A stretch of 64,000 nt of DNA from Amphiscolops sp. MND2022. Taxonomy: Eukaryota. Location of the stretch: NCBI GenBank assembly GCA_964187785.1, contig OZ076412.1, forward strand, positions 21,266,001 to 21,330,000. The letters run 5' to 3'. The notes beneath the pieces were generated by a model. That model did no database searches and was not told the DNA's origin. It saw only the letters and a list, made by a program, of their open reading frames with translations. A program made the translations under genes and the position numbers. This document shows, one piece after another, positions 2,430 to 31,135 of the stretch (position 1 is its first letter; each line of letters begins with the position of its first letter).

Positions 2430-5070
2430 TAGCCAATTTTTAAAAACAAAAAATATAAACACGCTAAGTACCAAAATCCTAAAGTTTTGTTGTTGAACAA
2501 TGTGGATACCAACCAGTACCTAACCTACAAAACTTTCTAATTTTAGTCGACAATTCTATATAAAAAAGAGCCCAACTTTTACAGTCAAAAAAGACTTTTT
2601 GAGAGAGATTCGAGAGCGACGAAATTTTTGTTCTATACCAGGGAAACCTGGGAATACCTGGGAAACGCATCTAAATTATCGCAAAGGGTCCGTCTCCCAT
2701 TCTTTACTTTTTAAACGAAACATACAAAACCAGACGAGACGAAAAGGTCACGCTATCTATTTTTTCACCCACTTCACCAAAAACATCAATATTTGGATAT
2801 TTTGATATTTTCGACATTTTGGGGACATTTTGAGGAACTTTTCCCACAAGAAACTACAATAGTCTCTTCGAAAAAGGCTACTGTATACCAAGTTCAGTCG
2901 TTGTTGAATGTTTAAACCAATCTAACACAGGAAATAGCTCGAAAATTTTACAAAAAAGTGCATAAAACAGTCAAAAACTTTTCACTTCTGCGTCATTCTG
3001 AGGTTTTTTTCCTTCGTCTCGAAGGTGTACTGCATAGCTAGTGATTTTGCTGGGAGCTTATTGAATATGAAAGATTTGACAGATATAATCGAAAAAATTT
3101 GACGTTTTCGAGTGAGGTTTTTGAAGAATTTTCGCAATATTTGTCGGATATTTTTTGAGACACAAACGACACACACGTTCCAATCCAATCATGAGCTCAT
3201 GGATTTTCTGGTTAAAGGGAACATTCGTAAAAGTTCCAAAATTGGGACTATGGTGTTAAAAATTCAGAAAATTTGGACATTTCATCAAATTCGAAAACAT
3301 TTATCCCACTTGCTTTCAAAAAGTGCGTTCTAAGTATTTTATTCCAAACGTTCAAGTTGATAATGGACGAAAAAAGTGCGGATTGAGCAGCGAAAATTGG
3401 GATTAATTTGCTAAAAATCGTACTTCGCTGTCATTTTTTGGATTTCGGTGTTTTTGAGGCCAATTCTAACAACAAGCCGGGAACGGCCCAAGTCGGCGCC
3501 ATATCTGAGGCTCAAAAAGACTCGAAAACCACTTTTTCTACAGCTGGAGACAACAAAAGCTCTCAAAAAACTAAAAATTGAGAAAAAAATTCCGAATTTT
3601 TTTTGATTTTTTCTTCGAAGTTTCCGGTAAGTCGCATAGTGCCGAAAAATGTAAAAGGAGGGACGCTTTTTATCTCATGTTAGACGCTTTGGATGCGTTG
3701 AAAATGAAGTACTAAGTACATATGGTAAAAATTGGTAAACGTGCATTAATTGCTTTAATGCACAAAAGGTGGAGGTTACGCGTTGAACTGACGAAAAAAA
3801 ACTAGCCACTGTAAGAGTCGGGGTTTTCTTCGAAAACGCCGACTAATAAATTGCTGTAATGTCTTCAAAAGACGCCTACTGCATACCTGGATTAGACGTT
3901 AGTGAGTGTTTAAACATTGTACGCAAGAGAATAGTTCAAAAACTACTGAAAAAATCAAAAAACTTGAAAAGTTGGACTTTTTTTGCTCATTTTGGGTCTC
4001 ATTTGGGCTCATTTTGAGGTACCTTTTTACAATTAAACAGCAACTTTCTCTTTAATAAGCGTGTTGCGAACCTAACTACTATTTGGAGCTCGTTGAAGCT
4101 TTTTTCGAGAAGAAAAAAATCCTGAAAATGTCAAAAATCGTTTTTGAGATTTTCGACTTTCCGCGGAGGATTTTGAGACATTTTTTAAACAGAAGCCTGC
4201 AATAATGTCCGACGAAAAAGCCTACTGCGTAACGAATTTAATCGTTGTTGAATGTTTTTAATATCCTGACTCATTATACTGACACAAAGATGAAAAATTT
4301 TTTCGATTTTTCGACTCATTGGAGTCATTCAGAAGTGTTTTCTAAGCTTAATGCTGCAACGTTCTCTTCAAAAAATGTACTGTAAAACTATTTTTTATAC
4401 TGAGCATTTTGGAGTTTTTAATCCATGAAATCTCTCGAAAAAACGACAAAAACGCGAATTTTTTTGGATTTTTCGAGATTTTCTTTCCTGATTTCTGGCA
4501 TTTTTCTGAAATAAATTGTAATTATCTCTTGACAAAAGCCTACTGGACAAGAAATTCTTTTAATTAGTTTTAACCTTCTAATCCACGAAGTCCATCCAAA
4601 AATTGACAAAATTCGATAAAAGTGGTGAGAATTGGGAAATTTTTGACATTTTCGGAATCAAATTTTTCATTTGGAAAACTGTATTTATTCCTTTACTGAG
4701 CCTATTGGACAACGAATTCTTTCCTTGTTGACCCTTTTCAACATTCTAATCCACAAAGTCTGATCCACAAACAATTGACAAAAATTGCATACAAACGGTA
4801 AAAATCAAGAAAATTTGGAGTTTTTGTCATTTCTGGGGACATTTTTCGTAGAAAAATTTCATTTATCTCCTCATAAAAGACTACTGGACAACCAATTCTT
4901 ACCTGGCTGAACGTGTCCAACGTCCTAATCCACGAAGTCTGTTGAAAACTTGACAAGAATTGTATAAAAACGTTAAAAATTGAGACACTCTGGAATTTTT
5001 TTTGGTTATTTTGTGTCATTCTGGGGCCATTTTGGTCATACCCAGAAAAGTCCAAAAATCTCTACAAATA
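2430..5070. repeat. Old degenerate repeat family with ~160-180 bp subunits
   Basis: Recurrent motif ctactg..caa.aatt...cgttgttgaa.gt.t....ctaatccacga near 2880, 3875, 4222, 4540, 4700 and 4880; related sequence near 38560-39000 and 47470-47600. Boundaries approximate. Confidence 0.5.
3471..3846 (-). mobile_element. Helentron/HINE-like non-autonomous element, copy 1 (short, diverged)
   Basis: Terminal aacaagccgggaacggcccaagtcggcgcc (hairpin plus subTIR) and a distal inverted subTIR cgccgact. Confidence 0.65.
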
Positions 5071-5448
5071 CCTATCACACGAAGCTATATTTATGTGTTG
5101 AATTCTATGGGTGAAGCGAGGTATTTTCCGCCCCCAACTGCTCTACTACGACATAATTTTGAGGCGCAAAAATAGCCAATTAAAAATGAGAAAAATATTC
5201 CAAACATTGAGCAAATCATTAGAAAAAAAGCAAAAATACAAGCGTTTAAAACAGTGTTTTAAACAACCCCTGTTTAAAACATGCCAACTCTGCTCGGTCT
5301 AGTGTTGAAATAATTGAAGCAATTATATCTAGAAAAACTTCAAATAAATTAGGCAAAACTCTGAAAGCTTCCACGTTTACTGACAATTTCCAACAGCAGA
5401 TTAACAGACTCCTTCATACCCTTTCGAGCATTCAGGAGGTGATCGATA

Positions 5449-6209
5449 CAGTACTGTGATTAAGAAATCGTCCCCCGTTCTCAACCAATTAAAATTGTTT
5501 ATTTGCTCTCACTTCCACTTTTGATGGGCGCATCAAGTGAAATTCATGTATATTCAAGACATTTTACCTTGATCATTTTTGAAATCAAATTACATCCATG
5601 CATTCAGCTGATTTGTGGGAGTTAACTGAGCATAAAACGTGCCAAAAAACTGTGGATAAAGCAGTCAAAATTAAGACAAACGTCAAAAAGTCTCGGAAAT
5701 AGCTATTTTCAACTTTCTCAATTTTTGTCTCGGAAATTTAGAAAAAAAATTAAAATATATTAGATGAAATTCTAAGAAACTTTTTTTCTGATGTCTTTCA
5801 AACTTTTCAACCGATTTCGAGAAAATCCAGCCTATAATCGCCCGGGCAATTATTTCTGAATCACAGTCATAGTCTTCACACCGCTAGTTAACGATTTAGC
5901 GAATTAGCGGCCGCGCAGGAACTTTTCAGCAATATCATTAACGATTGCATCATTAACGATATCATTAAAGGTAAGAGTTAGAATTTCGAAATTTTAACTC
6001 TCACCTTTATAAAAACCGACACAGTGTAAAATATTTCATTTTTTTCTTTCAGTCTAAATTGAGTTATCATTAAATTTTAAAATATACCTAAAATCAAATA
6101 TATTTGATAGTTTGGAGAAAATTTTTTTTAGCGAAATAGTGAATTTGAAATTAGCCGTTTAGCGATTAACGAAAAAAATAGCGATGTTAAAACCATGATC
6201 ACAGTACTG
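5449..6209. mobile_element. Tc1/mariner-type MITE
   Basis: TA TSDs at 5447-48 and 6210-11; TIR cagtactgtgatt(a/c)agaaat, ~21 bp with 1 mismatch, is restored once the nested insert at 5868-6197 is removed. Confidence 0.75.
5868..6197. mobile_element. hAT-type MITE nested in the right TIR of the Tc1-type MITE
   Basis: Exact 8 bp TSD atcacagt at 5860-67 and 6198-6205; imperfect TIRs catagtcttcacaccgcta / tagcgatgttaaaaccatg; subterminal ttagcg repeats. Confidence 0.75.
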
Positions 6210-7816
6210 TACTTGTACTTGCTATGTTGCTATAAGATTGCGATGTTCCTTCTGCAGTGTACAGGGTGGCTATTTCAGGGAAGCAAAATTATTAGTTTCC
6301 AAGAAAATGAAAGGCAGAGAAAAAAGTGATATCATGGTTTCACAAGAAAAGATGGTCCTCAAAGATGCTACTCTTCAGTCATGTAAAACGGAAAGGGTTC
6401 TCAAGTTTTAGTTAGTTCGCAGAGTTAATACCTCCAGGTTACAGAGAAACATTTTGACGTAGGTTATTGTGATTAAAGGGATTGAATGGGGGTAAAATGA
6501 GATGAGAGAAATGGGTTGTTTGAACAAGACCAAGCTTGACGCCGATGGATGCTTGTACTCAGGGGATCTAAATAAGACGATACATCCCCGCCCCACAAAA
6601 AGGAAGCGAAATGTTATTTATTGATACAAGAAAAACGATGACGAATTTCTCAATGAGAAGGCAGTTTTGTCAAAGATGCATATCATTGCTTATCCCCCAT
6701 ACAAATTCCTGTTCGCCATATCCTTACAAGTAATTCGCTACTTTTTCGAGGTGTAAACGTTTTTGTTTGCAAAAACTTCGTCTAATTTCACTTCTTGAAA
6801 TTCTCACGACGAGAATAGGATCCCAAAAGGACCTCTCTCTCTTTCTCTTATTTGGATCCCCAAAATGACAAAGTTATGGGGCAGTAGAAGTTCTGAATCT
6901 GTTTCCTTGGCAGTTGATTGTTATTGTTACAAAGAAATTGACTGTTAGCCAAAAGCTTGCTAGCTCAAAAAGCGGCCTTTCGATGAGGTGAAAAACTTCG
7001 CCGATTTCTTCAATGAAAAAAGTTTTTTGGGGGGAAATGGAGAAGGAATGCAAAAAATTACAAAATGAACCTCTTAATTCAATTCAGCCAGAAAACATCC
7101 AATTAGGCTTTAATTGAACAGTATGAAGGGAACAATGAAAAAATTCTTGCAAGTTGACAGTCAGGGAATTTGAAATTTCATCGAAATGATGAAAAAATGG
7201 CATTTTGATGTTGAAAAAATTGTTTTAAAAAATCGTACGATATCTAACACTCCTTCGGCAAAAATTGTTGATTGTACGAACTTACATTGCGGCAAACAAA
7301 TGAAGACACTCAATACGAAAGACTTTTGAAAACATTTGACATTCTGAAAACAGAAAATCCAAATTTGTTGCTTTTAACAAAGTAGCCCTTTATCAATAAA
7401 AAATTCTTCGGAAACCCGAAAGTCTAAGCGACCATCACAAGTAATGGCATTGCTTGTCGTCCCAGAGATCCCGAAGAAAAAGTTAACCGAAAATTTAAGA
7501 CACCAAAAAACGGCAATCTCCGGATATTCCGCGAAAAACGAAAAAAAAACATGAAGTATGCAGCAAGCTAACACTTACAATCAGCCTCACAACCACGAGT
7601 GATGTTAAGAAACGACACACAGAAAAATTTTACAGCTCCTGTTCTTTTCATCAAACCACTCTACACATAAAAGATTTCCCGTCAAAAAATGATCATTATT
7701 TTCAGAATTACACATGTTAATGAGCGATTAAAACAATCTGACTCTAAAAGCATCTCGAGAAAAAGGGTAGCGTTTATACTAAACCAAATCGCACCAAGTT
7801 CAAAGCATGAACGTTG

Positions 7817-7913
7817 AGAAAATTTTTAAAGAACTCGAAAATAAAACCAGGCTCTTGAAAGGTTCAACCTTTCAAGAGCCTGGTTTTATTTTCGAGTTCT
7901 TTAAAAATTTTCT
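7817..7913. repeat. Perfect palindrome with 48 bp arms and a 1 nt centre
   Basis: agaaaatttttaaagaactcgaaaataaaaccaggctcttgaaaggtt, then c, then its exact reverse complement. Confidence 0.97.
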
Positions 7914-8060
7914 TTCGTATTAATTTATTGGAAAAAATATCCTGTATTAACGAAGCTGTCACTAATCTTCGAACCCTTTCTGTAAGTTACAGAAAGGGTT
8001 CGAAGATTAGTGACAGCTTCGTTAATACAGGATATTTTTTGCAATAAATTAATACGAAAG
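7912..8060. repeat. Near-perfect palindrome with 74 bp arms and a 1 nt centre
   Basis: ctttcgtatt...ctttctgtaa, then g, then ttacagaaag...aatacgaaag; 1 mismatch; overlaps the previous palindrome by 2 bp (ct). Confidence 0.97.
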
Positions 8061-8195
8061 TCTGTGAATCAAAATCAATTCAAGAGGTTACTTTGGAACC
8101 AAGGAACAGGGAGCTTTGTCAACGGCTGAACGAATGCGTTCTGTGTTTTCGTCCCATGGGTGACACGAAAATCATAACATCGCCCCAGCTCCATG

Positions 8196-8293
8196 TTATA
8201 CAAAATTCGATTATAACGGAAAAACTGCCATGTTACCGCGTTTTTAAATGCGGTAACGTGGCAGTTTTTCCGTTATAATCGAATTTTGTATAA
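8196..8293. repeat. Near-perfect palindrome with 48 bp arms and a 2 nt loop
   Basis: ttatacaaaattcgattataacggaaaaactgccatgttaccgcgttt, then tt, then the reverse complement with 2 transition mismatches. Confidence 0.95.
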
Positions 8294-9039
8294 AACACCG
8301 CCGCTGAAAAAGGTCTGAGTACCTTCACGTGAGAACATCCATTCACAAGCTGATTAGACCGTTTAGGTTTTTACAGGTCGACACGGGAACTGTCTCAAAA
8401 TCGTGAAACTACATGAACAGTTGTTCTGAACTGTAACACTGAGTTCTATTTTCATATAGCAAACCTTGAAACGAGAATTTGAGGAAGAACTTCTGTGAAG
8501 TAATTAGGCGCGGAAAACTTTTCAAGATATGCATATAAATGAGTAAATCAATTGTAGGGCAAATTAGCCGAAACCCAATCCATTTTTAATGTCATTGAAT
8601 CCAGCGCCAGATAACGAGCAAGATGAATGAAGTGATCAAAATATAAATAGTTTGGTGAAACGCTGGGTAGCAAGAAGTCGAGTAATAGCGATGAAAAAAT
8701 CAAGATTCCACTGCTTTGATTGAGACTAGATCCAAAGCTGTTGACGTTAAGCGATAATAATTTATCCGAGAAACAACCGAGGATGCAAGCCGGGTGCAGA
8801 ATACCTGAAAAAAAAACAAACTTCATGAATACGTTCTTGTTGACCATAAGTAAGAAAAATTATGTTCTACAAAGATACGTGTAATACTGCGATTCGAACA
8901 TACGTATTTTGACATGAACTTGACACATGCTTCTATCCAACAAATACAGGAATGACAAGTAAAACAAATTCATTTTATATTTACCCCGAACATTACTTAT
9001 TTTTAAGAGCATCCACGAAAACCTAACATTAACCCTCAA

Positions 9040-9230
9040 CACGGAGACCACTTTTAGACATACAGAAAAAGATTTTCGCTGCACATCTGTAAGCATGGAG
9101 AAACAAAAAAAATGCTATTTTTGCGATGACACATTTGGCAATATTTCCTTTTTCACTGAAAATAGAAGCTGTAGATCCGGAAAAAGCGTTCGAGGAGATC
9201 TGGAGGTCCAGTGGAAAATACTTCAATCTT
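9040..9230 (+). pseudogene. Fossil coding fragment of unknown family, inverted paralog of 11490-11670 and 13830-14010
   Basis: Reads RHTEKDFRCTSVSMEKQK-AIFAMTHLAIFPFSLKIEAVDPEKAFEEIWRSSGKY with one frameshift in an A-run; aligns to minus-strand ORFs 11411-11722 and 13749-14060 with several synonymous third-position changes. Confidence 0.45.
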
Positions 9231-9483
9231 GTATCCGAACTGAAAGACTTCACACCCAGAAGTCTTCATTTCCTTTCATATTGAACATAACTGATAGCGT
9301 TTCCGGAAACAACGAATAGGGAACTGAAGAGGATCGTGTTTTTACAAGGGATTCTTGATTGATGCTGAGGATTTTGCGACTTAAGATTTAGACTCAAAAC
9401 AAAGTCTTGGGAAAAAACGCTTTCAGAATGCACGAAGTATTCCGTTCGAGCTGATATCTCCTCGATATCGCTCTTAGCCGGGA

Positions 9484-9885
9484 ACTGCTTGGAGTTGAGT
9501 TAGTACGGTACGGGTGGAACAGGACCTTCCGATCGTTCCTAAACAGCTCTTCAAAGTTCAAACTTCTGTACCAATCGTACTGTACAAAAGTCCACTCCAA
9601 GCAAGTTAATGTCTTGCGCCATTCAGCGCCGAGCCGGATTAGAAACTGGTCCCACCCCTCGGTCTGCACTTGCTTGGAGGTGATTTGGTACGGTTCGACT
9701 GGTACAGAAATTTGAAAATTCATAAGAAAAACGATTAGAAACGTCTGTACCGACCGTACCGTACTAACTAAACTCCGATCAGGTAGAGGCTTTGCACCAT
9801 TCAGCGCAGAGCACAGACCGGAAACCGGTCCTCGCTCTTTGCCCGCGCCTGCTTGGAGTTGAGTTAGTACGGTACGGTTGTTACA
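9484..9885. repeat. ~182 bp tandem repeat (2.2 units), each unit internally palindromic
   Basis: Units start at ~9484, 9667 and 9849 with gcttggag.t.a.tt.gtacggt.cg; the reverse complement of this module recurs inside each unit; spacer motif gc.ccattcagcgc.gagc at 9616 and 9794. Confidence 0.8.
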
Positions 9886-10124
9886 GAGTTCTGAAAACTG
9901 CCGATCTGAACAAAAACAATTTGAAGTCTCGAAAGAACCTCGGCTTCCACCCAAAAGCATTTGTGACTGTCACAACTGTTTCGACGTAATTCGGCTCATG
10001 ATCAATTGCCTCGGGAGCTACTCTTCGAGAGTTGCTTCGAGATAAACGAGTGAGACGGCAATTTGTCGTTGAAGAATCCAATCAAGCCCGAAGCAGTCAC
10101 TTTAAGACTTCAGAAAGTAAAAGG

Positions 10125-11410: not shown

Positions 11411-11722
11411 TCACAGTTCGGGTGTCGAGCATTTTTCTGTTATATACATTATTTCAGACAACGCTATCAAAAGACTTGTGTTGTATACAAAGGAGTATTT
11501 GCCAGTGGACCTCCAGATCTCCTCGAACGCTATTTCCGGATATACATCTTCTATTTTCAGTGAAAACGAAAATATTGCAAAATTTGCCATCGCAAAAATG
11601 GCAGTTTTTTGCTTTTCCATAGTTACAGATGTACACCGAAGATCTTTTTCGGTATGTCTAAGACTACATTGACTCCCGCTCTTGTTAGATTTCGGTGCAT
11701 TCATAATAAAGTCTCCAAACAT
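11411..11722 (-). pseudogene. Fossil ORF fragment, 103 aa, unknown family
   Basis: Open in both duplicated copies; homologous to the plus-strand fragment at 9040-9230. Confidence 0.35.
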
Positions 11723-11750: not shown

Positions 11751-14700
11751 CGTCGACTTTCCAAACAATTCAAGACCTTAGCTGTTAAACTAGGACTTTT
11801 GATGTAGACAGCAAGCGAGAGAAAATGAAACTGAACTTCAACTTCTCTGCCTTGAAAGTGAGATAATTTTACTTTTTGACTTGAAACAATTTCGATTGGG
11901 AGCCCGGAATACCATTAAACTCCCCTTATTTTGCTTCTAATTTCTCCACAAAAAACTCGGGGAAAGTACAAAAACTTGAAAGATCTCAATAAATGTAAGT
12001 TCCAGCTTTTTGAGGCCAAGAATATTTGAGGATGAGAACACATGAGACCTTACTTTTGGTTGAGAAGCGTACCTCAACGCTCTTGAAAACCACACTCTTA
12101 AAATAGTACCCTATGCCGAAAATAAATCGTTTTTTTTTTGTCTCCTGGATACGAATTTGAAAGAATCTGGACAGAGGAGAACAGAATTTTTTCATGGTAT
12201 ACTGAATTATTTGAAAATTCCACCCAAAAGAAAATTTTCAACCTTTGAACAAAAACAATGGTACGGATAGAATGCGAAGATATCTTCCAAACTGAAACAC
12301 AAACAGTTCAGGTCGGTGGCATTAATGCACAAGACACAAAACTTTTGGTTTCTGTCTGGCGGATTAATCTTCGAATGAAACAGTAGACGCTAAAGCTGTT
12401 ATCAAAATAGCCAGGATTGAATACTTGCCACAAAAAAGCTAACTCGAGGTGATATTTGTTGATGCTTCAACCTAATGCAGTGATATCATAGCCCAAACAT
12501 ACGAACTCCAGAGCAAGCTTTGCCAAGAGTTATTCTTTTGTTTTTGCTGACATGGATGCATTCTTGAAACAAAGTGAACAAAAATATCGAGTGAGTTTTC
12601 TCCATTGTACACTCAAATCATTGAAAAATTCCTAATTAAAGAAAAAACTGCCAATCCTAACAGTGATTTTGGACACCTTACCGTTTCCATCGCCCTGATA
12701 TCAATAGTTGATATCTTTCAAAATTACAGATAGGCGGAAGGTTTGAAGAAAAAGCAGCATGTTCAATGGCTTTAAACAAAGTTATTAGTGACCAGTTTAT
12801 AAAAAAACAAGTTCGTGTGGGAAAGAACCACAATGAATCATAGTTATCAGAGCGAACAATTCAGTTATTCAGGGTATTCAGCATAATAAAAACTATAACA
12901 TACCTTCTGTCAATTGAATTCAACGCAGCGGAAAACTAATTTGAACATTGCTTAACGTTGATTTCAACAAGTAAAAATTCGTCGACTTTCCCCATAACTC
13001 AAGACCTGAGCTGCTAAGCTAGGACAATTGATGTAGACAGCAAGCGAGAGAAAGTGAAAATGAACTTCAACTTTTCTGACTTAGAATAAATTTCGTTGGG
13101 ATCCTTAAGAGATAATTTTTGAGTTGAAACAAATTCGGTTGGGAACCCTATATATCCTTTAACCCCTCTGCTTTTCATACTAATTTCTCCACAAAAACCT
13201 CGGGGAAACGACAAAAACCTGAAAGATCTCAATAAATGTCAGTTCCAGCTTTTTAGAGGCCAAAAATAATGGAGGATGAGAACACAAATCTTTCGACTGT
13301 TTTTTCCAGAGGAAACGTTTTTGTGTTTCGAGTCTCAATCTTCATGCACAAAATCCCCAGCACCAATTACGAAGCCCTTGAGAACACTCTTTCCGGAACT
13401 TCGATATGAAAAAGCGAAAGCTTGAAGTAGTTAAGATTTATTTGCAAGCAAGCTAGATTCTTCACGGGATGAAATGTTTTAGATAGAATATAACATCAAA
13501 TGATCGGATAAACACTTGTTTTTCTTTCGTATACGGTATTCCGGAAAGCCTTTCAGTAAAGATCAATATGTAACCTAACAAACGCTCAAACTTGGTTACA
13601 TTCAACGCGGATCGAATTCTTCCTTGAGTCATAATGCGAAAACGCTTTCTGTAAAGTTCAGTTTACTTAAACAAATGCTCGAAACTGTTAGGATTTCAAA
13701 GGAAGACACATTCATCCTGCTGTGGATTGTTTTAGTTCGTATTTCCCATCACAGTTCGGGTGTCGAGCATTTTTCTGTTATATACATTATTTCAGACAAC
13801 GCTATCAAAAGACTTGTATTGTATACAAAGGAGTATTTGCCAGTGGACCTCCAGATCTCCTCGAACGATATTTCCGGATCTACATCTTCTATTTTCAGTG
13901 AAAACGAAAATATAGCAAAATTTGCCATCGCAAAAATGGCAGTTTTTTGCTTTTCCATAGTTACAGATGTACACCGAAGATCTTTTTCGGTATGTCTAAG
14001 ACTACATTGACTTCCGCCCTTGTTAGATTTCGGTGCATTCATAATAAAGTCTCCAAACATTGGTCTTCATTAACAGAACGTCACATTTCGTCGACTTTCC
14101 AAACAATTCAAGACCTTAGCTGTTAAGCTAGGACTTTTGATGTAGACAGCAAGCGAGAGAAAATGAAACTGAACTTCAACTTCTCTGCCTTGAAAGTGAG
14201 ATAATTTTACTTTTTGAATTGAAACAATTTCGATTGGGAGCCCGGAATACCATTAAACCCCCCTTATTTTGCTTCTAATTTCTCCACAAAAAACTTGGGG
14301 AAAGTACAAAAACTTGAAAGATCTCAATAAATGTAAGTTCCAGCTTTTTGAGGCCAAGAATATTTGAGGATGAGAACACATGAGACCTTACTTTTGGTTG
14401 AGAAGCGTACCTCAACGCTCTTGAAAACCACTCTTAAAATAGTACCCTATGCCAAAAAAAATCGTTTTTTTGTCTCCTGGATAAGAATTTGAAAGAATCT
14501 GGGCAGAGGAGAGCAGAATTTTTTCATGGTATACTGAATTATTTGAAAATTCCACCCAAAAGAAAATTTTCAACCTTTAAACCAAAACAATGGTACGGAT
14601 AAAATGCGAAGATATCTTCCAAACTGAAACACAAACAGTTCCGGTCGGTGGCATTAATGCACAAGACACAAAACTTTTGGTTTCTGTCTGGCGGATTAAT

Positions 14701-17700
14701 CTTCGAATGAAACCGTAGACGCTAAAGCTGTTATCAAAATAGCCAGGATTGAATACTTGCCACAAAAAAGCTAACTCGAGGTGATATTTGTTGATGCTTC
14801 AACCTAATGCAGTGATATCATAGCCCAAACATACGAACTCCAGAGCAAGCTTTGCCAAGAGTTATTCTTTTGTTTTTGCTGACATGGATGCATTCTTGAA
14901 ACAAAGTGAACAAAAATATCGAGTGAGTTTTCTCCATTGTACACTCAAATCATTGAAAAATTCCCAATTAAAGAAAAAACTGCCAATCCTAACAGTGATT
15001 TTGGACACCTTACCGTTTCCATCGCCCTGATATCAATAGTTGATATCTTTCAAAATTACAGATAGGCGGAAGGTTTGAAGAAAAAGCAGCATGTTCGATG
15101 GCTCTAAACAAAGTTATTAGTGACCAGTTTATAAAAAAAACAAGTTCGTGTGGGAAAGAACCACAATGAATCACAGTTATCAGAGCGAACAATTCAGATA
15201 TTCAGGGTATTCAGCATAATAAAAACTATAATATACCTTCTGTCACTTGAATTCAACGCAGCGGAAAACTAATTTGAACATTGCTTAACGTTGATTTCAA
15301 CAAGTAAAAATTCGTCGACTTTCCCCATAACGCAAGACCTGAGCTGCTAAGCTAGGACATTTGATGTAGACAGCAAGCGAGAAAAAGTGAAAATGAACTT
15401 CAACTTTTCTGACTTAGAATAAATTTCGTTGGGATCCTTAAGAGATAATTTTTGAGTTGAAACAAATTCGGTTGGGAACCCTATATATCCTTTAACCCCT
15501 CTGCTTTTCATACTAATTTCTCCACAAAAACCTCGGGGAAACGACAAAAACCTGAAAGATCTCAGTAAATGTCAGTTCCAGCTTTTTAGAGGCCAAAAAT
15601 AATGGAGGATGAGAACACATGAGACCTTATTTTTGGCTGATAAGCGAACCTGGAAGCTCTTAAACTTAATACTCTTAAAATAGTACCCTATGCCAAGAAT
15701 AAATCGTTTTTTGGTCTCGTGGAAACGATTTTGAAAAAATCTGGACAGAGAAGAGCAGAATTTTTTCATGGTACACTGAAGTATTTGAAACTTCCACCTT
15801 TACACCCGAACAATTGTACGGATAGAATGCGAAGATATATTCCAAACTGAAACACAAACAGTTCCGGTCGGTGGCATTAATGCACAAGACACAAAACATT
15901 TGGTTTCAGTCTGGCAAATTAATCTTCGAATGAGACCGTAGACGCTAAAATTTTATCAAAAAGGCCAAGATTGAATACTTGCCACACAAAAGCTAACTCG
16001 AGGTGATATTTGTTGATGCTCCAACCTAATGCAGTGATAACATAGCCCAAACATACGAACTCCAGAGCAAGCTTTGCCAAGAATTATTCTTTTGTTTTTG
16101 CTGACATGGATGCATTCTTGAAACAAAGTGGACGAAAATATCGAGTGAGCTTTCTCCATTGTACACACAAATCGTTGGAAAACTCCTAATCAAAGAAAAA
16201 ACTGCCATCCCTAACAGTGATTATGGACACCTTACCGTTTACATCGTCCTGATATCAATAGTTGATAGCTTTCAGAATTACGGATAGGCGGAACATTTGA
16301 AAAAAGTGCAGCATGTTCGATGGTTTTAAACAAAATTATTAGTGACCAGTTTATAAAAACAAGTTCGTGTAGGAAATAACAACAATGAATCATAGTTATC
16401 AGAGCAAACAATTCAGTTATTCAGGGTATTCAGCATAATAAAATCTATGACATACCTTCTGTCATTTGCATTCAACGCAGCGGAAAACTAATAGAAACAT
16501 TGCTCAACTTTGCTTACAACAAGTAAAAAATCGTCGACTTCCCCCACAATTCAAGACCTGAGCTGCTAAGCTAGGACATTTGATGTAGACAGCAAGCGAG
16601 AGAAAGTGAAACTGAACTTCAACTTTTCTGACTGAGAATAAATTTCGTTAGGATCCTTAAGAGATAATTTTTGAGTTGAAACAAATTCGGTTGGGAACCT
16701 TATATATCCTTCATCCCCTCTGCTTTTCATACTAATTTCTCCACAAAAACCTCGGGGAAACAACAAAAACCTGAAAGATCTCAATAAATGTCAGTTCCAG
16801 CTTTTTAGAGGCCAAAAATATTGGAGGATGAGAACACATGTGACCTTATTTTTGGCTGAGAAGGGTACCTCAGAGGTTTTAAACTCCATACTCTAAAAAA
16901 AGTACCCTATGCCAAGAATAAATCGTTTTTTGATCTCGTGGATACGATTTTGAAAAAATTTGGACAGAGAAGAGCAGAATTTTTTCATGGTACACTGAAT
17001 TATTTGAAACTTCCACCTTTACACCAAAACAATTGTACGGATAGAATGCGAAGATATCTTCCAAACTGAAACAAACAGTTCCGGTCGGTGGCATTAATGC
17101 ACAAGACACAAAACTTTTGGTTTCAGTCTGGCAGATTATTCTTCGAAAGGGACCGTAGACGCCGAAGATTTTATCAAAAAGGCCAAGATTGAATACTGGC
17201 CACAAAAAAGCTAACTGGAGGTGATATTTGTTGATGCTCCAACCTAATGCAGTGATATCATAGCCCAAACATACGAACTCCAGAGGAAGCTTTGCCAGAA
17301 GATATTCTTTTGTTTTCGCTGACATGGATGCATTCTTGGAACAAAGTGGACAAAAATATCGAGTGAGCTTTCTCCAATGTACACTCAAATCGTTGAAAAA
17401 GTCCTAATTAAAGAAAAAACTGCAATCCCTGACAGTGATTATGGACACCTTACCGTTTACATCGTCCTGATATCAATAGTTGATATCTTTCAGAATTACG
17501 GATAGGCAGAACTTTTGAAGGAAGTGCAGCATGTTCGATGGCTTTAAACAAAGTTATTAGTGACCAGTTTATAAAAACAAGTTCGTGTGGGAAATAACCA
17601 CAATTAATCATAATTATCAGAGCAAACAATTCAGTTATTGGGGTATTCAGCATAATAAAATCTATGATATACCTTCTGTCAATTGAATTCAACCCAGCGG

Positions 17701-20700
17701 AAAACTAATTTGAACAAGGCTTAACTTTGCTTACAACAAGTAAAAATTCGTCAACTTTCCGAACAATTCAAGACCTGAGCTGCTAATCTAGGACATTTGA
17801 TGTAGACAGCAAGCGAGACAAAGTGAAAATGAACTTCAACTTTTCTGACTGAGAATAAATTTCGTTGGGATCCATAAGAAATAATTTTTGAGTTGAAAAA
17901 AATTCGGTTGGGAACCCTATATATCCTTTAACCCCTCTGCTTTTCATACTAATTTCTCCACAAAAACCTCGGGAAAACGACAAAAACCTGAAAGATCTCA
18001 ATAAATGTCAGTTCCAGCTTTTTAGAGGCCAAAAATAATGGAGGATGAGAACACATGAGACCTTATTTTTGGCTGAGAAACGTACCTCAAAGGTTTTAAA
18101 CTCCATACTCTAAAAATAGTGCCCTATGCCAAGAATCAATCGTTTTTTGGTCCTGTGGATACGATTTTGAAAAAATCTGGACAGAGAAGAACAGAATTTT
18201 TTCATGGTACACTGAATTATTTGAAACTTCCACCTTTACACCAAAACAATTGTACGGATAGAATGCGAAGATATCTTCCAAACTGAAACACAAACAGTTC
18301 CGGTCGGTGGCATTAATGCACAAGGCACAAAACTTTTGGTTTCAGTCTGGCAGATTAATCTTCGAATGAGACCGTAGACGCTAAAGATTTTATCAAAAAG
18401 GCCAAGATTGAATACTTGCCACAAAAAAGCTAACTCGAGGTGATATTTGTTGATGCTCCAACCTAACGCAGTGATATCATAGCCCAAACATACGATCTCC
18501 AGAGCAAGCTTTGCCAAGAGGTATTCTTTTGTTTTCGCTGACATGGATGCATTCTTGGAACAAAGTGGACAAAAATATCGAGTGAGCTTTCTCTATTGTA
18601 CACTCAAATCGTTGAAAAAGTCCTAACTAAAGAAAAAACTGCCATCCCTAACAGTGATTATGGACACCTTACCGTTTACATCGTCCTGATATCAATAGTT
18701 GATATCTTTCAGAATTACGGATAGGCAGAACATTTGAAGGAAGTTCAGCATGTTCGATGGCTTTAAACAAAGTTATTAGTGACCAGTTTATAAAAACACG
18801 TTCGTGTGGGAAATAACCACAATGAATCATAGTTATCAGAGCAAACAATTCAGTTATTCAGGGTATTCAGCATAATAAAATCTATGATATACCTTCTGTC
18901 AATTGAATTCAACGCAGCGGAAAACTAATTGAAACATTGCTTAACTTTGCTTACAACAAGTAAAAAATCGTCGACCTCCCCCACAATTCAAGACCTGAGC
19001 TGCTAAGCTAGGACATTTGATGTAGACAGCAAGCGAGAGAAAGTGAAACTGAACTTCAACTTTTCTGACTGAGAATAAATTTCGTTAGGATCCTTAAGAG
19101 ATAATTTTTGAAACAAATTCGGTTGGGAACCCTATATATCCTTTATCCCCTCTGCTTTTCATACTAATTTCTCCACAAAAACCTCGGAGAAACAACAAAA
19201 ACCTGAAAGATCTCAATAAATGTCAGTTCCAGCTTTTTAGAGGCCAAAAATATTGGAGGATGAGAACACATGAGACCTTATTTTTGGCTGAGAAGGGTAC
19301 CTCAGAGGTTTTAAACTCCATACTCTAAAAAAGTACCCTATGCCAAGAATAAATCGTTTTTTGGTCTCGTGGATACGATTTTGAAAAAATCTGGACAGAG
19401 AAGAGCAGAATTTTTTCATGGTACACTGAATTATTTGAAACTTCCACCTTTACACCAAAACAATTGTACGGATAGATTGCGAAGATATCTTCCAAACTGA
19501 AACACAAACAGTTCCGGTCGGTGGCATTAATGCACAAGACACAAAACTTTTGGTTTCAGTCTGGCAGATTATTCTTCGAAAGGGACCGTAGACGCCGAAG
19601 ATTTTATCAAAAAGGCCAAGATTGAATACTGGCCACAAAAAGCTAACTGGAGGTGATATTTGTTGATGCTCCAACCTAACGCAGTGATATCATAGCCCAA
19701 ACATACGAACTCCAGAGCAAGCTTTGCCAGAAGATATTCTTTTGTTTTCGCTGACATGGATGCATTCTTGGAACAAAGTGGACAAAAATATCGAGTGAGC
19801 TTTCTCCATTGTACACTCAAATCGTTGAAAAAGTCCTAATTAAAGAAAAAACTGCCATCCCTGACAGTGATTATGGACACCTTACCGTTTACATCGTCCT
19901 GATATCAATAGTTGATATCTTTCAGAATTACGGATAGGCAGAACTTTTGAAGGAAGTGCAGCATGTTCGATGGCTTTAAACAAAGTTATTAGTGACCAGT
20001 TTATAAAAACAAGTTCGTGTGGGAAATAACCACAATTAATCATAATTATCAGAGCAAACAATTCAGTTATTGGGGTATTCAGCATAATAAAATCTATGAT
20101 ATACCTTCTGTCAATTGAATTCAACCCAGCGGAAAACTAATTTGAACATTGCTTAATTTTGCTTACAACAAGTAAAAATTCGTCAACTTTCCGAACAATT
20201 CAAGACCTGAGCTGCTAATCTAGGACATTTGATGTAGACAGCAAGCGAGAGAAAGTGAAAATGAACTTCAACTTTTCTGACTTAGAATAAATTTCGTTGG
20301 GATCCTTAAGAAATAATTTTTGAGTTGAAAAAAAATCGGTTGGGAACCCTATATATCCTTTAACCCCTCTGCTTTTCATACTAATTTCTCCACAAAAACC
20401 TCGGGGAAACGACAAAAACCTGAAAGATCTCAATAAATGTCAGTTCCAGCTTTTTAGAGGCCAAAAATAATGGAGGATGAGAACACATGAGACCTTATTT
20501 TTGGCTGAGAAGCGTACCTCAAAGGTTTTAAACTCCATACTCTAAAAATAGTGCCCTATGCCAAGAATCAATCGTTTTTTGGTCTCGTGGATACGATTTT
20601 GAAAAAATCTGGACAGAGAAGAACAGAATTTTTTCATGGTACACTGAATTATTTGAAACTTCCACCTTTACACCAAAACAATAGTACGGATAGAATGCGA

Positions 20701-23700
20701 AGATATCTTCCAAACTGAAACACAAACAGTTCCGGTCCGTGGCATTAATGCACAAGGCACAAAACTTTTGGTTTCAGTCTGGCAGATTAATCTTCGAATG
20801 AGACCGTAGACGCTAAAGATTTTATCAAAAAGGCCAAGATTGAATACGTGCCACAAGAAAGCTAACTCGAGGTGATATTTGTTGATGCTCCAACATAACG
20901 CAGTGATATCATAGCCCAAACATACGATCTCCAGAGCAAGCTTTGCAAAGAGATATTCTTTTGTTTTCGCTGACATGGATGCATTCTTGGAACAAAGTGG
21001 ACAAAAATATCGAGTGAGCTTTCTCCATTGTACACTCAAATCGTTGAAAAAGTCCTAATTAAAGAAAAAACTGCCATCCCTGACAGTGATTATGGACACC
21101 TTACCGTTTACATCGTCCTGATATCAATAGTTGATATCTTTCAGAATTACGGATAGGCAGAACTTTTGAAGGAAGTGCAGCATGTTCGATGGCTTTAAAC
21201 AAAGTTATTAGTGACCAGTTTATAAAAACAAGTTCGTGTGGGAAATAACCACAATTAATCATAATTATCAGAGCAAACAATTCAGTTATTGGGGTATTCA
21301 GCATAATAAAATCTATGATATACCTTCTGTCAATTGAATTCAACCCAGCGGAAAACTAATTTGAACAAGGCTTAACTTTGCTTACAACAAGTAAAAATTC
21401 GTCAACTTTCCGAACAATTCAAGACCTGAGCTGCTAATCTAGGACATTTGATGTAGACAGCAAGCGAGAGAAAGTGAAAATGAACTTCAACTTTTCTGAC
21501 TTAGAATAAATTTCGTTGAGATCCTTAAGAAATAATTTTTGAGTTCAAAAAAAATCGGTTGGGAACCCTATATATCCTTTAACCCCTCTGCTTTTCATAC
21601 TAATTTCTCCACAAAAACCTCGGGGAAACGACAAAAACCTGAAAAATCTCAATAAATGTCAGTTCCAGCTTTTTAGAGGCCAAAAATAATGGAGGATGAG
21701 AACACATGAGACCTTATTTTTGGCTGAGAAGCGTACCTCAAAGGTTTTAAACTCCATACTCTAAAAATAGTGCCCTATGCCAAGAATCAATCGTTTTTTG
21801 GTCTCGTGGATACGATTTTGAAAAAATCTGGACAGAGAAGAACAGAATTTTTTCATGGTACACTGAATTATTTGAAACTTCCATCTTTACACCAAAACAA
21901 TAGTACGGATAGAATGCGAAGATATCTTCCAAACTGAAACACTAACAGTTCCGGTCGGTGGCATTAATGCACAAGGCACAAAACTTTTGGTTTCAGTCTG
22001 GCAGATTAATCTTCGAATGAGGCCGTAGACGCTAAAGATTTTATCAAAAAGGCCAAGATTGAATACTTGCCACAAGAAAGCTAACTCGAGGTGATATTTG
22101 TTGATGCTCCAACATAACGCAGTGATATCATAGCCCAAACATACGATCTCCAGAGCAAGCTTTGCCAAGAGATATTCTTTTGTTTTCGCTGACATGGATG
22201 CATTCTTGGAACAAAGTGGACGAAAATATCGAGTGAGCTTTCTCCATTGTACACTCAAATTGTTGAAAAAGTCCTAACTAAAGAAAAAACTGCCATCCCT
22301 AACAGTGATTATGGACACCTTACCGTTTACAACGTCCTGATATCAATAGTTGATATCTTTCAGAATTACGGATAGGCAGAACATTTGAAGGAAGTTCAGC
22401 ATGTTCGATGGCTTTAAACAAAGTTATTAGTGACCAGTTTATAAAAACACGTTCGTGTGGGAAATAACCACAATGAATCATAGTTATCAGAGCAAACAAT
22501 TCAGTTATTCAGGGTATTCAGCATAATAAAATCTATGATATACCTTCTGTCAATTGAATTCAACGCAGCGGAAAACTAATTCAAACATTGCTTAACTTTG
22601 CTTACAACAAGTAAAAATTCGTCAACTTTCCAAACAATTCAAGACCTGAGCTGCTAAGCTAGGACATTTGATGTAGACAGCAAGCGAGAGAAAGTGAAAA
22701 TGAACTTCAACTTTTCTAACTTCGAATAAATTTCGTTGGAATCCTTAAGAGATAATTTTTGAGTTGAAACAAATTCGGTTGGGAACCCTATATATCCTTT
22801 AACCCCTCTGCTTTTCATACTAATTTCTCCACAAAAACCTAGGGAAAACGACAAAAACCTGAAAGATCAATAAATGTCAGTTCCAGCTTTTTAGAGGCCA
22901 AAAATAATGGAGGATGAGAACACATGAGACCTTATTTTTGGCTGAGAAGCGTACCTCAAAGGTTTTAAACTCCATACTCTAAAAATAGTGCCCTATGCCA
23001 AGAATCAATCGTTTTTTGGTCTCGTGGATACGATTTTGAAAAAATCTGGACAGAGAAGAACAGAATTTTTTCATGGTACACTGAATTATTTGAAACTTCC
23101 ATCTTTACACCAAAACAATAGTACGGATAGAATGCGAAGATATCTTCCAAACTGAAACACTAACAGTTCCGGTCGGTGGCATTAATGGACAAGGCACAAA
23201 ACTTTTGGTTTCAGTCTGGCAGATTAATCTTCGAATGAGACCGTAGACGCTAAAGATTTTATCAAAAAGGCCAAGATTGAATACTTGCCACAAGAAAGCT
23301 AACTCGAGGTGATATTTGTTGATGCTCCAACATAACGCAGTGATATCATAGCCCAAACATACGATCTCCAGAGCAAGCTTTGCCAAGAGATAATCTTTTG
23401 TTTTCGCTGACATGGATGCATTCTTGGAACAAAGTGGACGAAAATATCGAGTGAGCTTTCTCCATTGTACACTCAAATCGTTGAATGGTCCTAACTGAAG
23501 AAAAAACTGCCATCCCTAACAGTGATTATGGACACCTTACCGTTTACATCGTCCTGATATCAATAGTTGATATCTTTCAGAATTACGGATAGGCAGAACA
23601 TTTGAAGAAAGTGCAGCATGTTCGATGGCTTTAAACAAAGTTATTAGTGACCAGTTTATAAAAACAAGTTCGTGTGGGAAATAACCACAATGAATCATAA

Positions 23701-26700
23701 TTATCACAGCAAACAATTCAGTTATTCAGGGTATTCAGCATAATAAAATCTATGATATACCTTCTGCCAATTGAATTCAACGCAGCGGAAAAGTAATTCA
23801 AACATTGCTTAACTTTGCTTACAACAAGTAAAAATTCGTCAACTTTCCAAACAAATCAAGACCTGAGCTGCTAAGCTAGGACATTTGATGTAGACAGCAA
23901 GCGAGAGAAAGTGAAAATGAACTTCAACTTTTCTAACTTCGAATAAATTTCGTTGGAATCCTCAAGAGATAATTTTTGAGTTGAAACAAATTCGGTTGGG
24001 AACCCTATATATCCTTTAACCCCTCTGCTTTTCATACTAATTTCTCCACAAAAACCTAGGGAAAACGACAAAAACCTGAAAGATCAATAAATGTCAGTTC
24101 CAGCTTTTTAGAGGCCAAAAATAATGGAGGATGAGAACACATGAGACCTTATTTTTGGCTGAGAAGCGTACCTCAAAGGTTTTAAACTCCATACTCTAAA
24201 AATAGTGCCCTATGCCAAGAATCAATCGTTTTTTGGTCTCGTGGATACGATTTTGAAAAAATCTGGACAGAGAAGAACAGAATTTTTTCATGGTACACTG
24301 AATTATTTGAAACTTCCATCTTTACACCAAAACAATAGTACGGATAGAATGCGAAGATATCTTCCAAACTGAAACACTAACAGTTCCGGTCGGTGGCATT
24401 AATGCACAAGGCACAAAACTTTTGGTTTCAGTCTGGCAGATTAATCTTCGAATGAGACCGTAGACGCTAAAGATTTTATCAAAAAGGCCAAGATTGAATA
24501 CTTGCCACAAGAAAGCTAACTCGAGGTGATATTTGTTGATGCTCCAACATAACGCAGTGATATCATAGCCCAAACATACGATCTCCAGAGCAAGCTTTGC
24601 CAAGAGATAATCTTTTGTTTTCGCTGACATGGATGCATTCTTGGAACAAAGTGGACGAAAATATCGAGTGAGCTTTCTCCATTGTACACTCAAATCGTTG
24701 AATGGTCCTAACTGAAGAAAAAACTGCCATCCCTAACAGTGATTATGGACACCTTACCGTTTACATCGTCCTGATATCAATAGTTGATATCTTTCAGAAT
24801 TACGGATAGGCAGAACATTTGAAGAAAGTGCAGCATGTTCGATGGCTTTAAACAAAGTTATTAGTGACCAGTTTATAAAAACAAGTTCGTGTGGGAAATA
24901 ACCACAATTAATCATAATTATCACAGCAAACAATTCAGTTATTCAGGGTATTCAGCATAATAAAATCTATGATATACCTTCTGCCAATTGAATTCAACGC
25001 AGCGGAAAACTAATTTAAACATTGCTTAACTTTGCTTACAAGTAAAAATTCGTCGACTTTCCAAACAATTCAAGACCTGAGCTGCTAAGCTAGGACATTT
25101 GATATAGACAGCAAGCGAGAGAAAGTGAAAATGAACTTCAACTTTTCTGACTCAGAATAAATTTCGTTGGGATCCTTAAGAGATAATTTTTGAGTTGAAA
25201 CAAATTCGGTTGGGAACCCTATATATCCTTTAACCCCTCTGCTTTTCATACTAATTTCTCCACTAAAACCTCGGGGAAATGACAAAAACCTGAAAGATCA
25301 ATAAATGTCAGTTCCAGCTTTTTAGAGGCCAAGAATAATGGAGGATGAGAACACGAGACCTTATTTTTAGCTGAGAAGCGTACCTCAAAGGTTTTAAACT
25401 CCATACTCTAAAAATAGTACCCTATGCCAAGAATAGATCGTTTTTTGGTCTCGCGGATACGATTTTGAAAAAATCTGGACAGAGAAGAACAGAATTTTTT
25501 CATGGTACACTGAATTATTTGAAACTTCCACCTTTAAACCAAAACAATTGTACGGATAGAATGCGAAGATATCTTTCAAACTGAAACACAAACAGTTCCA
25601 GTCGGTGGCATTAATGCACAAGACACAAAACTTTTGGTTTCAGTCTGGCAGATTATTCTTCGAATGAGACCGTAGACGCTAAAGATTTTATCAAAAAGGC
25701 CAAGATTGAATACTTGCCACAAGAAAGCTAACTCGAGGTGATATTTGTTGATGCTCCAACATAACGCAGTGATATCATAGCCCAAACATACGAACTCCAG
25801 AGCAAGCTTTGCCAAGAGATATTCTTTTGTTTTCGCTGACATGGATGCATTCTTGGAACAAAGTGGACAAAAATATCGAGTGAGCTTTCTCCATTGTACA
25901 CTCAAATCGTTGAAAAAGTCCCAATTAAAGAAAAAACTGCCATCCCTAACAGTAATTATGGACACCTTACCGTTTACATCGTCCTGAAATCAATAGTTGA
26001 TATCTTTCAGAATTACGGATAGGCAGAACATTTGAAGGAAGTGCAGCATGTTCGATGGCTTTAAACAAAGTTATTAGTGACCAGTTTATAAAAACAAATT
26101 CGTGTGGGAAATAACCACAATTAATCATAGTTATCAGAGCAAACAATTCAGTTATTCAGGGTATTCAGCATAAAAAAATCTATGATATACCTTCTGTCAA
26201 TTGAATTCAACGCCGCGGAAAACTATTTTGAACATTTCTTAACTTTGCTTACAACAAGTAAAAATTCGTCGACTTTCCAAACAATTCAAGACCTGAGCTG
26301 CTAAGCTAGGACATTTGATGTAGACAGCAAGCGAGAGAAAGTGAAACTGAACTTCAACTTTTCTGACTTAAAATAAATTTCGTTGGGATCCTTAAGAGAT
26401 AATTTTTGACTTGAAAAAAATTCGGTTGGGAACCCTATACATCCTTTAACCCCTCTGCTTTTCACACTAATTTCTCCACAAAAACCTCGGGGAAACGAAA
26501 AAAAACTGAAAGATCTCAATAAATGTCAGTTCCAGCTTTTTAGAGGCCAAAAATATTGGAGGATGAGAACACATGAGACCTCATTTTTGGCTGAGAAGCG
26601 TACCTCAAAGGTTTTTAACTCCATACTAAAATAGTACCCTATGCCAAGAAAAAAATCGTTTGTTTGTCTCGTGGATACGATTTTGTAAAAATCTGGACAG

Positions 26701-29700: not shown

Positions 29701-31135
29701 GCATGTTCGATGGCTCTAAACAAACTTATTAGTGACCAGTTTATAAAAACAAGTTCGGGTGGGAAATAACCACAATGAATCATAGTTATCAGAGCAAACA
29801 ATTCAGTTATTCAGGGTATTCAGCATAATAAAATCTATGATATACCGTCTGTCAATTGAATTCAACGCAGCGGAAAACTAATTTAAACATTGCTTAACTT
29901 TGCTTACAACAAGTAAAAATTCGTCGACTCTCCAAACAATTCAAGACCTAAGCTGCTAAGCTAGGACATTTGATGTACACAGCAAGCGAGAGAAAGTGAA
30001 ACTGAACTTCATCTTTTCTTACTTAAAATAAATTTCGTTGGGATCCTTAAGAGATAATTTTTGACTTGAAACAAATTCGGTTGGGAACCCTATACATCCT
30101 TTGACCCCTCTGCTTTTCATACTAATTTCTCCACAAAAACCTCGGGGAAACGACAAAAACCTGAAAGATCTCAATAAATGTCAGTTCCAGCTTTTTAGCG
30201 GCCAAAAATATTGGAGGATGAGAACACATGAGACCTTATTTTTGGCTGAGAAGGGTATCTCAGAGGCTTTAAACTCCATACTCTAAAAAAGTACCCTATG
30301 CCAAGAATAAATCGTTTTTTGGTCTCGTGGATACGATTTTGAAAAAATCTGGACAGAGAAGAACAGAATTTTTTCATGGTACACTGAAATATTTGAAACT
30401 TCCACCTTCAAACCAAAACAATTGCACGGATAGAATGCGAAGATATTTTCCAAACTGAAACACAAACAGTTCCGGTCGGTGGCATTAAAGCACAAGACAC
30501 ACAACTTTTGGTTTCTGTCTGGTGGATTAATCTTCGAATGAAACCGTAGACGCTAAAGCTGTTATCAAAAAGGCCAAGATTGAATACTTGCCACAATAAA
30601 GCTAACGCGAAGTGATTGTTGTTGATGCTCCACTCGAATGCAGTGATATCATAGCCCAAAGAAACTAACACCAGCAAGCTTTGCCAAGATTTATTCTTTT
30701 GTCTTTGCTGACCTTGATACAATCTTGAAAAAAGTGGACAAAAATATCGAGTGAAGTTTTTCCATTGTACGCTCATATCTTCGAAAAAATTCTTAATTAA
30801 AAAAAATGGCCATCCTCAACCGTGATTATGGTTACCTTACCGTTTCCATCGCCCTGCTATCATTAGTTGATGTCTTTCAATATTACAGATAGGCAGAAGA
30901 TTTGAAGAAACTGCAGCATGTTCGATGGCTTGAGACAATGTTATTGTGATCAGTTTATAAAAGATAAAACAAGTTTTTGTGGGAAAAACCTCAATAAAAC
31001 AATCATCGGAGCAAACAATTCAGTTATTCTAGTTTCTTGGTATACTGTTATCTATATTATACTTTTTGTCAATTGAACTCAACACAGTGGAATAATAATT
31101 TCAACATTGCGGAACTTTGATTTCAACACAAGACA
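11751..31135. repeat. Large tandem array (macrosatellite) with ~1218 bp unit: 15 full units plus one partial
   Basis: Unit marker cgtc(g/a)act recurs at 11751, 12980 (partial), 14089, 15313, 16532, 17749, 18969, 20181, 21400, 22620, 23837, 25051, 26267, 27485, 28704 and 29922. Confidence 0.97.
13749..14060 (-). pseudogene. Duplicate of the fossil ORF fragment at 11411-11722
   Basis: Near-identical translation, inside the 2337 bp duplication. Confidence 0.35.

Follow-up and report, generated by a model that had tools for sequence, protein, structure and literature searches.

Two unrelated back-to-back palindromes with single-base centres in the Amphiscolops genome, best read as a paired fold-back scar of break repair

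The palindromes and their neighbourhood

The window analysed here, a stretch of 64,000 nucleotides, is located at 21.27 Mb of contig C4 in an assembly of 1.07 Gb and 1,929 contigs. It contains two long palindromes, P1 (7817-7913) and P2 (7912-8060), which stand back-to-back and are unrelated in sequence. An earlier note on this DNA had described a perfect palindrome with 48-nt arms abutting one with 74-nt arms and a single mismatch, both with 1-nt centres and sharing a CT. Re-reading of the sequence agreed with this description, and P1, P2 and their CT overlap were recovered at the same coordinates. In addition to the pair, we found a third long palindrome, P3, which lies 135 bp downstream of P2, and a short one at 1.8 kb upstream of P1/P2. 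These four palindromes, three long and one short, lie inside 2.3 kb. The features are as follows, with positions counted on the forward strand of the window.

5966-6009: small spacerless palindrome of 44 bp, with 22-nt arms, two mismatches and its centre on a CpG
7817-7864: arm A of P1, 48 nt, 100% complementary to 7866-7913 and unique in the genome
7865: centre of P1, a single C, spanned in each of the four runs by a unitig of 61 nt (7835-7895) whose depth equals that of the flanks
7866-7913: arm A' of P1, the reverse complement of A (100%)
7912-7913: CT common to A' and B', pairing with 7817-18 and also with 8059-60
7912-7985: arm B' of P2, the reverse complement of B, carrying the sole mismatch at 7931
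7986: centre of P2, a single G, spanned by the unitig 7956-8016 at flank depth
7987-8060: arm B of P2, 74 nt, 99% complementary to 7912-7985
8061-8195: unique spacer of 135 bp between P2 and P3, matching only itself in the genome search (unitig 8011-8225)
8196-8293: P3, with 48-nt arms (8196-8243 and 8246-8293), two mismatches and the centre TT

The mismatch of P2 is the pair 7931/8041. Positions 7816/7914 and 7911/8061 are unpaired and set the limits of the two palindromes, and because of this the overlap of P1 and P2 is exactly the CT at 7912-7913.

For the ORFs at 8548-8847 and 9394-9960 and three others in the window no Pfam match was found, and 9394-9960 had no Atlas match either, so that no coding context is apparent for the palindromes. 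This latter ORF, of 188 aa on the minus strand, overlaps a tandem repeat of ∼179 bp, present in ∼2.6 copies at 9468-9937. Each ∼179-bp unit holds a diverged internal inverted repeat, with arms of 33-46 nt that are 72-88% complementary. An inverted self-match at 9485-9887 was considered as a decayed palindrome of the P1-P3 class and was found to be part of this tandem repeat. A segment of ∼168 bp occurs in inverted local copies at 9054-9222, 11494-11661 and 13832-13999 with 87-88% identity, and in weaker copies on contig C13; a link with the 1.2-kb macrosatellite at 11751-31658 is probable. At 6623-6815, 1 kb upstream of P1, lies a repeat of ∼100-190 bp, which is also present in a tandem array with a period of ∼730 bp on C2 (41.86-41.88 Mb) and at scattered sites, with 66-80% identity. 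Mitochondrial COX1 reads TGA as Trp, as befits an animal genome.

Read support, copy number and background frequency

Read evidence was taken from k = 31 contigs of four public runs (X1 to X4), which derive from one sample and one study, probably the assembly's own sample; the unitigs were compared over window 6800-9300. The ends of the unitigs fall at just those points at which a palindrome is bound to interrupt a de Bruijn graph. The junction between A' and B' is crossed at flank depth by a 78-nt unitig (7884-7961), and the centre of P3 is crossed at flank depth by the unitig 8201-8288. The depth of the centre and junction unitigs equalled that of the flanks in each of the four runs (18-20, 77-80, 50-53 and 66-69), and the P2 arm-internal unitig 7932-7985 had exactly twice the flank depth. 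No contig bypassing the palindromes and no palindrome-free allele was found among the k-mer contigs of the four runs of this one sample. The junctions are carried by essentially all molecules of the sampled individual, and P1/P2 looks homozygous. Full-depth centres and junction, together with the absence of an alternative path, indicate a germline change and not a technical fold-back, and the structure is germline DNA. With junctions at flank depth and no contig skipping them, the structure can be neither an artefact of the assembler or of polishing nor the product of fold-back chimeras in a minority of molecules.

When window 7700-8400 was used to search the whole genome (1.07 Gb), the matches were confined to the locus and, on the opposite strand, to its own arms. 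Neither a paralogous copy of the locus in this search nor a second allele in the k-mer contigs was detected, and the flanks (∼7000-9050) are single-copy. Since the arms have no other genomic match and show twofold k-mer depth, each new arm appears to have been copied from the adjoining flank.

A loose end at 8026 was considered as a paralogue or an alternative allele and was traced to C11:23940400, where only a 20-nt T-rich stretch is common with arm B; it is thus neither of the two. This exact identity, TACAGGATATTTTTTGCAAT, is located at window 8024-8043 (covering 8041, the base at which the arms of P2 differ) and at C11 ∼23940427-23940446, and is probably chance in T-rich sequence. At window 8267, one contig of run X4 only runs on into AGTACTCTGCGTTGATACCACTGC, which we take to be a SMART-type primer in reverse complement. 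Such primers are used for cDNA libraries and for amplified long-read libraries of ultra-low input, and PCR amplification may thus have been applied to at least one run of the sample. In the homopolymer at window 7540-7541 the runs disagree with the assembly by one A more in X1/X2 and one less in X3/X4, which is either an error of homopolymer length or heterozygosity.

The background of such palindromes was scanned over 264 kb, namely the 64-kb window and 200 kb taken from elsewhere on the chromosome. No further palindrome of the P1-P3 class was present in the rest of the window, and none in the 200 kb from 20 other places of the same 87-Mb chromosome. Markov and dinucleotide shuffles of the 264 kb likewise gave zero palindromes of this class. 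The folding energy of 7800-8310 (511 nt) was −201 kcal/mol, compared with −52 ± 4 in shuffles (z = −35.5). At a background density of at most three such palindromes per 264 kb, independent palindromes would almost never abut. The palindrome pair is real, far beyond chance and strongly clustered.

The arms differ at 0/48 positions in P1, 1/74 in P2 and 2/48 in P3. Both differences of P3 (8231/8258 and 8240/8249) are transitions between CpG and TpG/CpA. Changed CpGs numbered 0 of 8 as against 2 of 10, with one non-CpG change, and the differences in divergence are not significant. The earlier note had taken the near-perfect arms to be either recent or actively homogenised. The low counts agree with a recent origin; homogenisation is not needed, since the CpG transitions of P3 are in line with ordinary mutational ageing. 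The palindromes are supported as real, fairly recent duplications that are ageing.

Origin of the palindrome pair

P1/P2 is best read as a mutational scar, not as a gene or a mobile element. With moderate confidence we propose that one two-ended break gave rise to it, both ends of which made fold-back tails that were joined via a 2-nt microhomology. The double-strand break would have occurred between A (...gaaaggtt) and B (ttacagaaag...), A (7817-7864) being the native left flank and B (7987-8060) the native right flank. Each end would have acquired a fold-back consisting of one base (C, when each end is read 5′ to 3′ toward the break) and then the reverse complement of the flank, over 48 nt on the left and 74 nt on the right. 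A' and B' would thus be new DNA, either synthesised or unfolded from the fold-back. Two routes to the fold-backs can be considered: (i) each end carried a tight or covalently closed hairpin, in which a nick was later made at a distance of 48 or 74 nt from the tip, or (ii) a polymerase was primed by the snapped-back 3′ end. Joining of the tails through the CT at 7912-13, with fill-in by alternative end joining, would give the product A-c-A'-B'-g-B, exceeding the ancestral allele by 120-122 bp in length. The break, the assignment of the native arms, the order of events and the enzymes are what we infer from the arrangement of the arms.

The order A-A'-B'-B, with A and B unrelated, amounts to a pair of opposed U-turns. 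With A and B as the native flanks, both U-turns would lie at one ancestral point, and the inner ends of the new tracts would coincide because they were ligated together. Each presumed insert reproduces the adjoining flank in reverse complement (A' 100%, B' 99%) and is found nowhere else. Fold-back at a break is the most economical reading of this order, of the exact abutment overlapping by 2 nt, of arms that occur nowhere else and of the lack of a TSD, and on the same grounds the idea put forward in the earlier note, of a double-strand break whose two ends folded back and were joined by microhomology, fits best. A 2-nt microhomology at the junction has a chance of ∼1/16 and is therefore weak evidence by which the joining pathway is not identified.

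Known snap-back and templated insertions are mostly shorter than ∼30 nt, and real hairpin loops would need at least 3 nt (or 3-4 nt). A snap-back would be expected to leave a real loop and short tracts, whereas the centres here are 1, 1 and 2 nt and the tracts 48-74 nt. If loops need at least 3 nt, all three centres would be so tight by chance with a probability of at most ∼1/64. We lean toward a tight or covalent hairpin, opened by a nick tens of nt from the tip, or an intermolecular template switch, which is under no loop constraint, over polymerase snap-back as the source of such 1-2 nt centres. In snap-back SD-MMEJ/TMEJ, a 3′ end folds back and copies the flank and the nascent DNA anneals to the other end via microhomology, with primer repeats of 2-9 nt (PMC5728401, PMC2943611). 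Fold-back priming and fill-in produce hairpin-capped ends, which are normally opened by Mre11 with Sae2/CtIP; the yeast fold-back centres are short inverted repeats with spacers, of 6 and 35 bp in the examples (PMC10622511). The genome encodes a CtIP/Sae2-like protein, and its sole DNA_pol_A (PF00476) match, at C4:28174305-28175621 on the minus strand, lies in an uninterrupted 811-aa frame (E = 6e-86) for an A-family polymerase.

P3, and perhaps 5966-6009, would be single fold-backs of the same kind, dating from the same episode as the pair or from breaks that the hairpin- and cruciform-prone DNA induced later. For the palindrome at 5966-6009 the process may have been the same one, acting earlier or yielding a shorter product. 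These two make the locus a local cluster, which opens the way to rival histories of a sequential fragile site or of multi-switch replication.

It is rather unlikely that the palindromes arose as sequential, independent fold-backs at a self-perpetuating fragile site, where one palindrome (say P3 or P2) came first and later breaks fell at its edge, with P1 formed precisely at the boundary of P2. Long palindromes are known to be prone to breakage (PMC10622511). Such a history would suit the three long palindromes and one short palindrome in 2.3 kb, compared with none in 200 kb elsewhere, and the graded divergence of P1 (0), P2 (1) and P3 (2). However, the gradient is not significant, and the second break must land exactly on a palindrome boundary.

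Replicative template switching or MMBIR, which we regard as unlikely, would require no free double-strand break: the nascent strand would have copied A' backwards, switched via CT to B' and returned, or else two converging forks stalled at one lesion would each have turned back. As outlined in the relevant papers, new perfect inverted repeats and hairpins are known to arise by template switching (PMC5453318, PMC10710096, PMC8794818), and the templated insertions of MMBIR are described as composed of several parts, each switch showing microhomology, and as having coincident junctions tens of bp apart (PMC8421209). A switch between molecules has no hairpin-loop constraint, in agreement with the 1-nt centres, and the cluster of events fits one multi-switch episode. 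On the other hand, two U-turns at one ancestral point, automatic for the two ends of one break, need three precisely placed switches in one nascent strand. Template-switch tracts in general contrast in size with a gain of 120 bp. Template-switch mutations, in the outline that these sources give of them, are clustered substitutions and small indels, not 120 bp of added sequence (PMC5453318, PMC10710096, PMC8794818).

The earlier note had likened the structure to a very long P-nucleotide footprint of a hAT, Transib or RAG nuclease. As an excision footprint, a hairpin-forming transposon (hAT, MULE or Transib/RAG-like) would have capped both flanks, and distal opening and joining would have left A' and B' as giant P tracts. 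Palindromic additions are indeed present on both flanks of one putative break, with A-A' and B'-B abutting. Since the hAT, MULE and Transib transposases cap both flanks together, a pair is their expected product (PMC5499845). The genome is rich in hAT transposase frames, with 2,215 candidates for the hAT dimerisation domain, of which all 150 that were scored (150/150) passed the cut-off, and open frames of as much as 697 aa; recent activity of hAT elements is thereby suggested. The chemistry of Hermes, a hAT, leaves one unpaired base at the hairpin tip, and this agrees with the 1-nt centres. Against a footprint, the hAT TSD rule fails, as AAAGGTT+G (the end of A and the complement of the P1 centre) is not equal to G+TTACAGA (the P2 centre and the start of B). 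At the end of A and the start of B, the 5-bp (Transib), 8-bp (hAT) and 8-9-bp (MULE) versions of a TSD all mismatch. No transposon remnant is present at the locus, and tracts of 48-74 nt are far longer than known P-nucleotide tracts. Assignment to this class of footprint is improbable: the hAT/Transib analogy is mechanistically apt, but membership is not supported.

Several loci of the long hAT frames (610-697 aa) have equal scores; examples of hAT matches are C3:11861948, C4:62392027, C13:19965496, C1:77183102, C1:82932543 and C7:12942104. The RAG1 core had no match in the genome, a result which is uninformative either way. A TSD-like repeat, gaaaggttc/gaaagggttc, was also considered and rejected; it is offset by 5 nt from the P2 centre, and 5% of random window pairs equal it (p ∼0.05).

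Insertion of an opened dumbbell, in which neither A nor B would be native, is very improbable. A duplex of ∼120 bp with closed hairpin ends (a 244-nt self-complementary circle) would have been nicked once and inserted between 7816 and 8061. Such a molecule reads x2-c-x2'-x1'-g-x1, which is the order A-A'-B'-B with single-base loops, and a staggered opening of 2 nt could account for the AG found at each outer end (7817-18, 8059-60). The genome holds no source copy of the 120-bp sequence, however, and the k-mer depth is exactly twofold; no TSD was found at 7816/8061, and the single palindrome P3, 135 bp away, would be left unexplained.

P1-P3 create very stable hairpin- and cruciform-prone DNA, and three very stable hairpins in a row could be taken for a functional hairpin-RNA, miRNA-like or siRNA locus, or for a fold-back transposon or MITE pair. 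Rfam in evalue mode did return matches to long-hairpin MIR families, with E values down to 1e-14. All of these were far under the gathering scores (the best 76 bits, against a gathering score of 119), and they comprised dozens of unrelated plant MIR models on both strands, as a generic effect of perfect stems; judged by gathering thresholds after the permissive search, the locus belongs to no Rfam family. The arms have no other genomic copy and therefore neither a trans target nor a TE family, there is no TSD, and 1-nt loops are atypical of processed precursors. We consider a functional hairpin or fold-back element highly improbable, and the locus is most likely without function of its own. 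The earlier note had allowed that the arms might occur elsewhere as TIRs of a MITE; only self matches were found genome-wide. A MITE or fold-back element was rejected by the single-copy arms, the twofold k-mer depth and the absence of a TSD, and no TSD was found at the outer borders 7816/8061 or 8195/8294.

An artefact of sequencing, assembly or polishing, such as a fold-back chimera, is extremely improbable: the read support does consist of contigs of one sample, probably the assembly's own, and the primer-like loose end at 8267 in one run means that the library may be PCR-amplified, but all centre and junction k-mers are at flank depth in four runs with no alternative path, a chimera would be a minority product at the scale of whole reads and not 97-149 bp at 100% frequency, and arm mismatches that include CpG transitions are unexpected from a technical fold-back copy.

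Related systems and wider meaning

We best read the pair, then, as a variant among the known scars of templated or inverted insertion, which stands out by its tract length, tight centres, pairing and local clustering. Snap-back SD-MMEJ/Pol theta insertions (Yu & McVey 2010, PMC2943611; Khodaverdian et al. 2017, PMC5728401) resemble it in that the flank, which can be either one, is copied as an inverted repeat and joined by short microhomology. In those insertions the reported tracts range from a few nt to some tens of nt and start at primer repeats of 2-9 nt; the present ones, by contrast, measure 48 and 74 nt with 1-nt centres, both ends would have folded, and the product is fixed in a germline genome. 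Fold-back priming in yeast sae2/mre11 mutants (PMC10622511) and in human inverted duplications (PMC3907307) shares with the proposed scar a break, intrastrand fold-back, fill-in, a capped end and a palindromic junction, and its outcome is decided by the hairpin-opening nuclease, Mre11 with Sae2/CtIP (PMC10622511). Those events end in a dicentric chromosome, with duplications of kb to Mb at natural spaced inverted repeats, whereas here the fold-backs would have stopped after 48-74 nt and the rejoined ends restored a normal chromosome.

Footprints of hAT, MULE, Transib and RAG (PMC5499845) carry palindromic additions from opened hairpins on both flanks, as seen here; the present locus differs in having no TSD or remnant and in tracts more than 10 times as long as typical P tracts. 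Short template-switch mutations, as outlined by Loytynoja & Goldman 2017 (PMC5453318) and Monttinen et al. 2023 (PMC10710096), also yield in one event a perfect inverted repeat of adjoining sequence, and are a possible source of new hairpin RNAs. In that outline they are replication-linked clusters of substitutions and small indels, in contrast to ∼120 bp present as two opposed copies meeting at one point. The junctions of tumour double-minute amplicons (PMC3734650) have new palindromes at joined break ends, formed partly from inserted nucleotides, but with stems of 4-12 nt and loops, in somatic cells and between distant loci.

If our reading is right, the locus is a clean natural case of both ends of one break folding back before rejoining, with tracts several times longer and turns tighter than in experimental alt-EJ systems. 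Tentatively, it may also represent a recurrent, genome-wide germline process in which both break ends are made into long hairpin tails, of tens to hundreds of nt and with centres of 0-1 nt, before being rejoined, leaving hundreds of pairs. This process, were it true, would imply either that a hairpin-forming nuclease has gone unrecognised or that hairpins are opened unusually far from the tip, and it would steadily supply the genome with new perfect hairpins and fragile sites. Recurrence of such pairs genome-wide would be a species-level mutational signature, through which one could probe which enzymes cap and open DNA ends here. If the signature holds, it asks how long perfect palindromes last in a metazoan germline and with what frequency fragile sites or new hairpin-RNA genes originate from such events. 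Pairs located inside multi-copy transposons would permit reconstruction of the pre-event state without an outgroup.

The base signature of a genome-wide process may be a single G or C at the centre, with a C on each strand running into the turn. Among the non-chance short palindromes of the 264 kb, those with a spacer of 1 were the commonest class, and nine palindromes with a 1-nt centre and arms of at least 10 nt were found where 0.2 were expected. The centre was G or C in 9/9 of these and in 10/11 when the arms were at least 9 nt, counts that come from a small sample with a threshold set post hoc and in which 2-3 of the nine resemble copies of one repeat family. In chance-level palindromes with 1-nt centres (arms of 5-8 nt), G/C centres occurred at the background frequency of 39%. 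The bias toward G/C centres in the short 1-nt-centre palindromes is suggestive. Examples of these palindromes are located at window 41439-41461, 5244-5264, 34151-34171 and 3583-3603.
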